A stretch of DNA of 64,000 nucleotides from Mobula hypostoma (taxonomy: Eukaryota): NCBI RefSeq assembly GCF_963921235.1, contig NC_086109.1, positions 1,426,001 to 1,490,000 of the forward strand. The letters run 5' to 3'. Every line of letters starts with the position of its first letter. Positions within the stretch are counted from its first letter, which is position 1. This document shows positions 45,138 through 53,278 of the stretch, piece by piece. A program made the position numbers and the translations under genes. A model generated the notes under the pieces. It made no database searches and was not told where the DNA came from. It saw only the letters and a list, made by a program, of their open reading frames with translations.

Positions 45138-45203
45138 CTACATCTTCCTGGGAGCTTTCATCTGCAGAGATTCGTAGGTATCAATGCGGTGTTCGCCCAG
45201 GCC
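45138..45203 (-). CDS. FCER1G: FcR-gamma-like chain, last coding exon ([21 protein letters not shown])
   Basis: Acceptor ctgtctgctcgcag; phase 0; second half of the distal ITAM; TAG at 45138-45140. Confidence 0.9.
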   Translation of the reverse strand, partial: [21 protein letters not shown]

Positions 45204-45723
45204 CTGCGAGCAGACAGAGAGAGGGAGGTTACGCATAAACTGAGAGGAAAGGAGATTCTGAATGAGGAGGGGAGCAAGGGAGAGAGATGGTGAAGAGGAA
45301 GAGAGGGAGAGACATAGCGAGGAGTGTGAGAAAAATAGATGAGGTAGATACACTGGGATGGAGAGGGGGGAAAAAGCGAAAGGGTAACAATGAGAGATGA
45401 AAATAAAGAAATAACGTGAGCGGAAGAGGGAGGAGTGAGGGTTCATGGGGACAGGGAGAGGATGGGAGAACCAGGGAGAAATAGAGAGGGAAGAGGTAGA
45501 TGGGGAGAGAGATTGGGAAGGGCAACTCTGAGAAAAAGCGTGAATTAGAGATAAATTTAGACACCGGCAGAGACGGACTAAACGGAGAGAAAGAGAGTGG
45601 GAAACGCAGAACGAGACTTCCAAAATTAAAAATAAAGTGAGAGAAAAAGGAAAATAGTAACAAAGACTAGAAAGAAACAAAAAGTGAGGGAAAGATGGAG
45701 AGTGGAGAAACAGGTGCACATAC

Positions 45724-45744
45724 CGTGTAAACACCCTCTTCTTT
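45724..45744 (-). CDS. FCER1G: FcR-gamma-like chain, 21-nt exon (KEEGVYT)
   Basis: tcttttctctgcag|AAAGAAGAGGGTGTTTACACG|gtatgt; same size and motif as human exon 4 (KSDGVYT). Confidence 0.9.
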
Positions 45745-45799
45745 CTGCAGAGAAAAGAGATGGAGGGTAAACGTTAGAAATATTATTGTAACAACAAAC

Positions 45800-45880
45800 C
45801 ATGCCCCATCACACACTCCCAGGACACGGGTCAGACACGGTGAAACTCCCTCTACACTGTCCCATCACATACTCCCAGAG
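45800..45880. repeat. 58-bp minisatellite, about 1.3 copies (left remnant)
   Basis: cccatcacacactcccaggacacgggtcagacac..gtgaaactccctctacactgt; same unit as 51326-51535. Confidence 0.85.
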
Positions 45881-46477
45881 CGCGGGTTAGATCAGACCTC
45901 TGATCTATTCTATCAGATAGATATAAACTATCCGTACGGGATAGATTCCAGAGGGTACCTCAACTTGGATGGAAAAAAATACATTTTATTTTCACTAACC
46001 TCTAACTGAAATTTAGCATTTCCTATAATTACGAATGTAGGCAACAAACCACTACCGGTGACCAATAGAAATAACAGATATTTTTATATAACATTACCGT
46101 TGTTATAGATTTAGGGAAATATTGTTTACTACACTCTCATTGCTACTTCGGCATTACGTTAGTTCTTAGACCGCTGCTAGATGGAACATGATCGCAGTCT
46201 TCCTGACCGCAGACGTCCGTGCGAAGTAGCTGACCAACTATCGGCTGGTAGTCCTGTCGCCACCAGACGGTGAATCACGTGTTCTCACATTTGTGTCCCC
46301 GATACCGACGTTGCTGTCTATTATTCCTCATCTAAAATTGTTTGTTGATCATAGTGTGGAAGGAAGTGTCATTTTTTTTATTGTTTATTACTTTTGCAAA
46401 ACTGTACAGTACAAATGACACACGTAAAAGTTGCTGGTGAACGCAGCAGGCCAGGCAGCATCTCTAGGAAGAGGCGC

Positions 46478-46513
46478 AGTCGACGTTTCGGAACGTGACC
46501 CTTCGTCAGGACT
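46478..46513 (-). ncRNA. Minimal hammerhead ribozyme motif (PLE type), weaker helix II
   Basis: AGUC CUGACGA A GGGUCACGUUCC GAAAC GUC GACU on the minus strand. Confidence 0.65.
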
Positions 46514-47195
46514 AACTGAAGGAAGAGTGAGTAAGAGATTTGAAAGTTGGAGGGGGAGGGGAGATCCAAAATGATAGAAGACAGGAGGGGGAGGGATGGA
46601 GCCAAGAGCTGGACAGGTGATTGGCAAAAGGGATACGAGAGGATCATGGGACAGGAGGCCCAGGGAGAAAGACAGGGGTGGGTGGGGGTGGAACCTACGG
46701 TCTCTCCGCCAGAGAAAGCAGGATCTCCCAGTGGCCACACATTTTAATTCCACATCCCATTCCCATTCCGGTATGTCTATCCACGGCCTCCTCTACTGTC
46801 AAGATGAAGCCACACTCAGGTTGGAGGAACAACACCTTGTATTCCGTCTGGGTAGCTTCCAACCTGATGGCATGAACATTGACTTCTCTAACTTCCGCTA
46901 ATGCCCAACCTCCCCTTCGTAACCCATCCGTTATTTATGTATATACACACATTCTTTCTCTCTCTCCTTTTTCTCCCTCTGTCCCTCTGAATATACCCCT
47001 CGCCCATCCTCTGGTTCCCCCGCCCCCCGCCCTTTTCCTTCTCCCTGGGCCTCCTGTCCCATGATCCACTCGTATCCCTTTTGCCAATCACCTGTCCAGC
47101 TCTTGGCTCCATCCCTCCCCCTCCTGTCTTCTATCATTTTGGATCTCCCCCTCCCCCTCCAACTTTCAAATCTCTTACTAGCTCTTCCTTCAGTT

Positions 47196-47231
47196 AGTCC
47201 TGACGAAGGGTCTCGGCCCGAAACGTCGACT
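47196..47231 (+). ncRNA. Minimal hammerhead ribozyme motif (PLE type)
   Basis: AGUC-CUGACGA-A-GGGU(CUCG)GCCC-GAAAC-GUC-GACU: helix I AGUC/GACU, palindromic ACGU helix III, GUC cleavage triplet. Confidence 0.8.
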
Positions 47232-51546: not shown

Positions 51547-51621
51547 CTTTTTCCCACCGGGACCGGCTGATTTCTCTCCTTTCAGCTCCTCATAGACATC
51601 AGTGGCTCCATGGCGCAGGTG
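51547..51621 (-). CDS. FCER1G: FcR-gamma-like chain, extra 75-nt exon ([25 protein letters not shown])
   Basis: tgtttgtcgctgtag|...|gtgagt; phase 0/0; completes ITAM YEHL-x7-YEEL. Confidence 0.85.
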
Positions 51622-51835
51622 CTACAGCGACAAACACATAATAAGGAAACGTCTACGCATGCAGGGTTTAAAGCCTCTCCCCATCTACACATCACGGACA
51701 GCCCGTTCTCCAATTCAGTTGATTAATCCTCCCACCCATTTCATGTCGGTGCAGGGCCGTGGGCTCCGTCCCCAGCACCTGCCCACAGGTGATGCTCTCC
51801 CTTCCCGCTCCCTCTCACCCCAGCTCCCGCCTAAC

Positions 51836-51886
51836 CTCGTACTCCGACTGCCCGGCCGCTGCTTTCTCCTTCCTCCGATCCAAGAT
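51836..51886 (-). CDS. FCER1G: FcR-gamma-like chain, 51-nt exon ([17 protein letters not shown])
   Basis: cattcaccgcag|...TACGAG|gttagg; resembles human exon 3 (IQVRKAAITSYE). Confidence 0.82.
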
Positions 51887-52254
51887 CTGCGGTGAATGAT
51901 TGAGAAAGGTTTCAATTATCTTTCAAGTATAACATCATCATCTTCCCCACCGCCCGGCCCTTTAGACAAAGTAATTGTGGGAAGGACGAATGCCCCGCCC
52001 CAATTACAAAGCCACGAATGATCCGTAACCCCGGCACCACCTCTTGCACAAATCCCACTCCCTTCCCCCAGTTTGCTTAATACCCAGCGATGTCTGTCCT
52101 GAATCTCCTCGGTGTTGCAGTCCCACAGCCTCTGGGGGAGAGAATGCTCCCACTGCATTTCTCCCCATCTCCGTCCAGAACGGGTCCACCCCTCATTCTG
52201 AGACTGTTCTTCTTAGACACCATAGTCTGGGGGAACACCCTTCCTACACGCACC

Positions 52255-52620
52255 CTGTGTGTGTGTGTGTCTTTGCGTGCGGTGGGGGGAGGGGTGTAGT
52301 TGTGTGTGTTGTGTGTTGCTTTCTGTCTGTATGTCTGTGGTGTGTGTGTTTCTGTCTGTCTCTGTATGTGTGTGTGTGTTTGTCTGCGTGTCTGTGTTTG
52401 TGTGTCTGTGTGTTTGTGTGTCTGTTCTGTGTATCTGTGTGTTTCTGTGTCTGTGTATCTGTGTTTGCGTGTGTGTCTGTGTGTGTTTGTGTGTCTGTAT
52501 GTCTGTGTATCTGTCTGTGTGTTTGTGTCTGTTCTGTGTATCTGTGTGTGTTTGTCTGTATTTCTGTGTATCTGTCTGTGTGTTTGTGTGTCTGTTCTGT
52601 GTATCTGTGTGTTTGTGCCC
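52255..52620. repeat. Degenerate (TG)n/(TGTC)n compound microsatellite
   Basis: Directly visible; explains the overlapping C/V- and H/T-rich ORFs. Confidence 0.97.
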
Positions 52621-52984
52621 TTCCCTTCTTTCCCAACTAGCCACTCACTATTTTACACCCCCCCCCCACACACACACTCTTTCCCCTGCCTCCCATTTCC
52701 AGAGGAAACAACCCCAGCTTCTCCCATCTCTCCTCAGTGACAGTATTCCAATACCAGAAGTATTCTCATAACACTTCACTCCCCTACTCACGTCCCCCAC
52801 CCTCTCCCAATGACCCCGTCACTCCAGGAATGTGGTGCCCAGAACTGTTCCCAATATCTCGTTCCAGCGAGCCCTCCCCGAGCTTACACTCTGTGTCTGG
52901 GCTATTGTGTCCCGAAAGCCCATATTAGGTTAGTCAAGTGAGAAACTCATCTTCATACCCTCACACTGTCCCCCAGTAACCCGT

Positions 52985-53175
52985 CTCCCCCAGCACCCAG
53001 TGTCCCACTGATATTAATCCAGCTCCCTCACACTATCCTTCAGCGTCCCTCAACCACAGCACCCAGTGTCACTGCCTGTGTCCCCATTGGTATTAATCCA
53101 GCTCCCTCACACTAACCTTCAGTATACCCTCAACCCCAGCGCCCTGTGTCGCCGACTGTGTCCCTACTGATGGGA
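52985..53175. repeat. Imperfect tandem duplication adjacent to the transmembrane-exon donor
   Basis: tattaatccagctccctcacacta and cagcacccagtgtc each recur. Confidence 0.7.
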
Positions 53176-53186
53176 ATGTAACTCAC

Positions 53187-53278
53187 CTTCAGACGGCAGT
53201 ACAGAGCCGTTAACACCGTCCCGTAGACAAAGAGTATCGCATCGAGCACATAACAAATCTCAGGCTCACGCAGTCCAG
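53187..53278 (-). CDS. FCER1G: FcR-gamma-like chain, transmembrane exon ((A)[30 protein letters not shown])
   Basis: 92 nt, phase 1/0, same size as human FCER1G exon 2; CYxLD dimerisation motif and LYCRLK; ttttctctctctgggcag acceptor, gtgagt donor. Confidence 0.95.

Follow-up and report, generated by a model that had tools for sequence, protein, structure and literature searches.

The 64,000-nucleotide (nt) stretch of DNA from the devil ray Mobula hypostoma analysed here (the window) carries exons 2 to 6 of the ray orthologue of FCER1G, the gene for the Fc receptor gamma chain (FcR-gamma). The gene is expressed and encodes a chain with two ITAMs (tyrosine-based activation motifs of the immunoreceptor type), spliced as had been proposed from the letters of the window by an earlier reading that made no database searches (the sequence-only reading); we hold this with high confidence. 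FcR-gamma is the common signalling chain of many activating immune receptors. The gene is itself ordinary and already annotated, and its value lies in the comparative pattern: the 75-nt exon that completes the first ITAM was found in 10/10 chondrichthyan and all amphibian orthologues sampled. Based on this pattern, we regard an ancestral two-ITAM FcR-gamma as reasonably likely.

Exon structure and transcripts

FCER1G lies on the minus strand, and all coordinates given here are positions within the window. Five exons with AG acceptors and GT donors at their borders joined in frame, and their translation was exactly the peptide given by the sequence-only reading. Exon 2 encodes a short extracellular stub with the dimerising Cys, followed by a transmembrane helix with a charged Asp that ends in LYCRLK. 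Exon 3 encodes a basic juxtamembrane stretch and, in its closing SEYE, the first half of ITAM1, and the cassette exon 4 completes this motif (HL-x7-YEEL) and supplies the linker. The short exon 5 (KEEGVYT) provides the first half of ITAM2, while exon 6 provides the second half (GL-x7-YESL), the C-terminus, and a TAG stop. Both ITAMs, YEHL-x7-YEEL and YTGL-x7-YESL, are canonical, and both are interrupted by a phase-0 intron between Y+1 and Y+2. The complete product is a 117-amino acid (aa) type I membrane adaptor with a signal peptide, a Cys-bearing stub, an Asp-bearing transmembrane helix, and a tail with the two ITAMs.

RNA evidence came from assembled contigs of runs X2, X6, X7, and X9, all from one study, aligned to positions 47450-53449. 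These contigs (349-662 nt, mean word depth 176-357) matched the listed exon pieces without a single mismatch, and all four runs showed the joints 53187/51886 and 51836/51621, with minus-strand GT..AG borders. The overhang at 51547 was the reverse complement of the 21-nt exon 5 and ran directly into the start of exon 6, and the overhang at 53279 encoded IFLFHSSRA, the end of exon 1. The Mobula mRNA is thus exon 1-2-3-4-5-6 with nothing between exons 4 and 5. Both junctions that the sequence-only reading had singled out for checking, 51836/51621 and 51547/45744, are therefore real. That reading had also allowed that the 75-nt exon might never be spliced in, and the contigs instead carry it: the dominant Mobula transcript in the four runs includes exon 4. 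No exon-4-skipping joint was among those listed for Mobula, though contigs could hide a rare isoform.

Word searches of the same runs agreed with expressed FCER1G. Of the sampled words from 44690-45203, covering the last exon and 3' untranslated region (UTR), 78-100% were present in X2, X6, X7, and X9, while only 17-23% of words from the whole 9.1-kb locus were present in X2, X6, and X7, as RNA should show. The run search with the whole 9.1-kb locus was dominated by repeats (shares of 16-28%), and the specific search was that made with the 3' exon.

The range proposed by the sequence-only reading was right for exons 2 to 6 and left out exon 1 and a 3' UTR of about 450 nt. The annotated gene span places exon 1 (MKAILVLIFLFHSSRA plus one base) outside the window, about 2 kb past its end at position 64000. 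A sequence scan of 53279-64000 found no Met-led hydrophobic exon with a phase-1 donor, and the known FCER1G N-terminus was encoded nowhere in the window. When all introns were scanned for extra half-ITAM exons, only implausible matches and no credible candidate emerged, and together with contigs that run from exon 4 through 5 to 6 this indicates that no third ITAM exon was missed.

Table 1 Features of FCER1G in the window.
Feature	Position	Strand	Description and basis
Exon 2	53187..53278	-	92 nt, phase-1 start; AG/GT borders, PF11628, RNA joint 53187/51886
Exon 3	51836..51886	-	51 nt; AG/GT borders, both joints in four runs
Exon 4	51547..51621	-	75 nt, phase 0 on both sides; joint 51836/51621 and overhang at 51547 in four runs
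Exon 5	45724..45744	-	21 nt; borders and overhang consensus at 51547
Exon 6, coding part	45138..45203	-	63 nt plus TAG stop; borders, RNA overhang
Probable 3' UTR	44690..45137	-	About 450 nt, ends past AATAAA at about 44705 (end approximate); sequence and RNA word share

Several repeats lie within the introns. A 58-nt unit is repeated 3.6 times directly downstream of exon 4 (51327-51533), with a related copy upstream of exon 5 (45820-45900). Contigs at this unit had mean word depths of 30,000-110,000, which indicates a very abundant transcribed repeat that is SINE-like (short interspersed nuclear element) or satellite-like. Positions 48450-48850 are the intronic 3' tail of a long interspersed nuclear element (LINE), where RNA contig depth reached about 200,000; this signal belongs to repeats elsewhere and does not mark an FCER1G exon. 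Intron 2 contains a TG/CA-rich compound microsatellite of about 320 nt at 52301-52617.

Orthology with FCER1G

The product was 100% identical to P0001 over residues 18-117; NCBI lists this 117-aa protein as 'high affinity immunoglobulin epsilon receptor subunit gamma [Mobula hypostoma]', and its annotated gene spans 21,097 bp. The product matched the Pfam family TCR_zetazeta (PF11628) with 55.1 bits against a cut-off of 25, and its closest solved structures were FcR-gamma chains, then CD3-zeta. The stub Cys (C25) and the intramembrane Asp (D29) of the C-Y-x-L-D motif were invariant in alignments of 20 and of 24 orthologues, and the gamma-type C-terminal ITAM, YTGL-x7-YE[ST]L with a phase-0 split after the 21-nt exon, was present. 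Together with the tree below, the identity to the annotated protein and the Pfam match bear out the proposal that this is an FcR-gamma-family chain with two ITAMs. The single ITAM typical of mammalian and teleost FcR-gamma was not found, as the ray chain has two; this is not disqualifying, since the two-ITAM chain of Xenopus is an accepted member of the family. No result contradicted FCER1G as the identity of the gene.

Phylogeny and synteny, both suggested as checks by the sequence-only reading, placed the gene with FCER1G and not CD247. We built a maximum-likelihood tree from only those parts common to all chains (the stub, the membrane helix, and the last ITAM; 57 columns), which gives no firm branching order inside the gamma and zeta clades. 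All 29 of 29 gamma chains, every chondrichthyan sequence included, were split from the 14 zeta chains with a Shimodaira-Hasegawa-like approximate likelihood ratio test (SH-aLRT) value of 98. The immediate upstream neighbour on the same strand was a 458-aa protein with a Complex1_49kDa domain (PF00346), NDUFS2, which ends about 930 bp away. Linkage of FcR-gamma to NDUFS2 is conserved from pufferfish to human, whereas CREG1 has been named as the gene linked to CD3-zeta (Guselnikov et al., PMC4536121). Mobula CD3-zeta (P0296) was located on another chromosome-sized record. The description of the ray protein as an intermediate between FcR-gamma and CD3-zeta does not hold phylogenetically, as it falls squarely within the gamma clade.

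The alternative that the gene is CD3-zeta, or a zeta-like paralogue in which a third pair of ITAM exons was overlooked, is extremely improbable. Its two ITAMs are numerically between those of gamma and zeta, and the gamma tail is collinear with the last two zeta ITAMs. However, the RNA contigs pass from exon 4 to 5 to 6 with nothing in between, the introns hold no further half-ITAM exon, the adjoining gene is NDUFS2, the gamma clade placement has an SH-aLRT of 98, and Mobula has its own three-ITAM CD3-zeta on a different chromosome. The Mobula gene thus shows neither the three ITAMs, nor the position in the tree, nor the locus of CD3-zeta, and we exclude a zeta chain with a missed ITAM on these five lines of evidence.

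Comparison of individual motifs identified gamma ITAM2 as the clear counterpart of zeta ITAM3 (E 4e-10). The two-ITAM gamma tail aligned collinearly, with similar motif spacing, to zeta ITAM2 plus ITAM3 (hhalign probability 97%, E 1e-11), with 46/62 score units coming from the last ITAM. ITAM1 alone had a weak preference for zeta ITAM1 (E 0.0025 and 0.011). In a separate hidden Markov model comparison of gamma ITAM1 with the zeta ITAMs, scores were 5 bits or less.

Some public entries for this family appear to be mislabelled or faulty. The Engraulis, lungfish, and whale shark entries (P0208, P0136, and P0020) are likely faulty gene models: the protein listed for Engraulis as 'CREG1 isoform X3' is a chain of the CD3-zeta-like kind, in keeping with CREG1-CD247 linkage; in the lungfish FCER1G model, about 160 unrelated residues extend the N-terminus; and the whale shark FCER1G model runs into the intron past YT. 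A Sardina protein named 'gamma-like' (P0193, 157 aa, two ITAMs) grouped on a long branch with the zeta and zeta-like chains of teleosts, outside FcR-gamma.

Distribution and history of the 75-nt exon

Two canonical ITAMs were present in the batoids Mobula, Hypanus, and Leucoraja and in the sharks Scyliorhinus, Stegostoma, Mustelus, Hemiscyllium, and Carcharodon. Rhincodon also carries the extra exon, in a gene model with a faulty C-terminus. Among amphibians, two canonical ITAMs were found in every frog sampled, in the salamanders Pleurodeles and Ambystoma, and in the caecilians Microcaecilia, Geotrypetes, and Rhinatrema. ITAM1 kept its second Tyr in all of 24 two-ITAM orthologues and its first in nearly all. 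One-ITAM chains were those of bichir, teleosts, coelacanth, the annotated lungfish model, squamates, turtles, an alligator, birds, and mammals, and in the alignment these proteins lacked exactly the 25 residues of exon 4.

The statement that mammalian FcR-gamma equals the ray gene minus its 75-nt exon was borne out by this column-for-column alignment and by predicted isoforms without exactly that segment in three two-ITAM species, Scyliorhinus torazame (P0016), Geotrypetes (P0024), and Lissotriton (P0071). Since exon 4 is 75 nt long with phase 0 on both sides, skipping it keeps the reading frame and gives a mammal-like chain. The mammalian 'SYE' aligned with the first half of ITAM1, as the sequence-only reading had suggested, and the same relic, Y-E or Y-D, closed exon 3 in coelacanth, the lungfish model, and the non-avian reptiles (squamates, turtles, and a crocodilian). 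The relic was absent from ray-finned fishes and birds. A further cue from that reading, the resemblance of 'GGKK' to the zeta 'MGGKP', was restricted to batoids and not kept in sharks or amphibians.

The chondrichthyan and amphibian lineages split near the base of jawed vertebrates. In both groups the extra exon has the same position, the same phase, and a similar length (~25 residues). Against a profile of chondrichthyan exon 4, amphibian ITAM1 had a median score of 17.9 bits (range 7.1-24.1), whereas the medians for gamma ITAM2 and zeta ITAM1, 2, and 3 were 1.3-4.9 bits, with a maximum of 13.4. Most likely, cartilaginous fishes and amphibians carry one orthologous cassette exon, which goes back to the jawed-vertebrate ancestor and has been lost on several occasions. 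The sharing of the exon by these two groups, the relic YE, and the skipping isoforms make the ancestral two-ITAM chain proposed by the sequence-only reading plausible.

Several observations weigh against this history. By simple counting on the species tree, two gains are preferred to four losses, with ray-finned fishes, coelacanth, the lungfish model, and amniotes all without the exon. The reciprocal profile was weak, as amphibian exon 4 scored chondrichthyan ITAM1 at a median of only 4.1 bits, about like zeta ITAM2 (median 3.6 bits). The first half of ITAM1 was degenerate in the chimaera Callorhinchus (YGIE) and in Narcine (YEQM), although the exon was present in both.

The counting result and the weak reciprocal profile would both fit gains of the cassette exon made separately by cartilaginous fishes and by amphibians, for instance through a duplicated piece of ITAM-coding sequence beside a pre-existing 'YE', with the one-ITAM chain of bichir, teleosts, coelacanth, the lungfish model, and amniotes as the original state. 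We give this explanation roughly a one-in-four standing. It would require that the exon arrived in both groups at the same site, between a YE-ending exon and the 21-nt exon, flanked by phase-0 introns and almost equal in length, and it sits poorly with the preference of the chondrichthyan profile for amphibian ITAM1 (17.9 bits vs 4.9 or less). The functionless 'YE' half-motif in exon-less lineages is also easier to explain as a leftover. Some of the one-ITAM gene models may be skipping isoforms, as are predicted in the three two-ITAM species. Repeated gain at the same site, completing a half-motif already in place, appears less probable than several losses of a cassette that can be skipped.

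Taken as a whole, the reading that we favour somewhat over its competitors combined is that the two-ITAM form was ancestral and was kept by cartilaginous fishes and amphibians, while independent losses removed it from ray-finned fishes, coelacanth, possibly lungfish, and amniotes. The human 'YE' would then be a fossil of the first half of ITAM1, and where the exon is retained, skipping of exon 4 may switch between four and two Syk-docking sites per dimer.

By analogy with the zeta/gamma family, two chains would form a disulfide-linked dimer through the stub Cys, and the membrane Asp would pair with a basic helix residue of ligand-binding immune receptors. Upon receptor clustering, Src-family kinases would phosphorylate the ITAM Tyr residues, and Syk or ZAP-70 would dock via their tandem SH2 domains, so that two ITAMs per chain would offer four docking sites per dimer vs two in mammals. 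For the ray chain, the homodimer, the activating-receptor partner, and the recruitment of Syk are all inferred from conserved residues. ITAM1 could instead be a neutral leftover with no signalling role in rays, the chain acting like a one-ITAM FcR-gamma. The decayed half-motifs of Callorhinchus and Narcine and the exon-less isoforms predicted in other species are in line with this possibility, but we consider it improbable: both ITAM1 Tyr residues, the +3 Leu/Ile, and the 7-residue spacer were retained in nearly all of the 24 orthologues, and the dominant Mobula transcript contains the exon in four runs.

Genomic surroundings and comparison with known chains

We recognised no other host genes in the window. 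A broken Helitron-type element occupies 32313-35038 on the plus strand, with open reading frames (ORFs) containing Helitron_like_N, PIF1 helicase, and Pif1 2B domains. Positions 400-44000 and 54800-56100 consist mostly of LINE copies on both strands, with endonuclease and reverse-transcriptase ORFs such as those at 7578-10255 and 28813-30513.

A two-ITAM FcR-gamma was reportedly described in Xenopus by Guselnikov et al. in 2003a. The ray gene resembles FcR-gamma of Xenopus laevis and X. tropicalis in its six exons, two ITAMs, split additional ITAM, and NDUFS2 linkage, and P0015 and P0051 from Xenopus, 46-47% identical to the ray protein, align with it across the extra exon. The published account of Xenopus FcR-gamma gives six exons, two ITAMs, an NDUFS2 linkage, and an intron in the first Tyr module of the additional ITAM, and calls this second ITAM unique to Xenopus (Guselnikov 2015, PMC4536121). 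In contrast, we found the same exon in rays, skates, sharks, a chimaera, salamanders, and caecilians. According to Akula et al. 2014, cartilaginous fish lack a gamma chain (PMC4016189). The public databases therefore conflict with both published statements. Our literature search, which missed many subscription papers, turned up no publication describing a two-ITAM gamma chain from sharks or rays. Novelty is lowered in that Xenopus already has a published two-ITAM FcR-gamma (PMC4536121) and the Mobula gene is already annotated.

CD3-zeta (CD247; P0296 in Mobula) belongs to the same Pfam transmembrane family as the ray gamma chain and has the same dimerising Cys and membrane Asp. It differs in having three ITAMs and 178 aa, in its location on another chromosome, in its sequence (31% identity), and in its separate clade. 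The ITAMs of CD3-zeta are also split by phase-0 introns.

Mammalian FCER1G (86 aa; solved complexes 8ywa and 8zgs) has the same stub, CYxLDAILFxYG...LYCRLK segment, and C-terminal YTGL-x7-YExL as the ray protein. Human FCER1G has exons of 92 and 21 nt, and the regions encoded by the transmembrane exon and the 21-nt exon align gap-free between ray and mammal. The mammalian chain is without the 25-residue exon and so has one ITAM, with 'SYE' or 'NYE' left where ITAM1 would start. A two-ITAM gamma chain in every chondrichthyan and amphibian sampled alters the probable ancestral arrangement of the zeta/gamma family and points to a natural splice switch between one and two ITAMs that could affect signal strength. 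If true, two-ITAM ancestry accounts for the orphan Tyr in human FcR-gamma.

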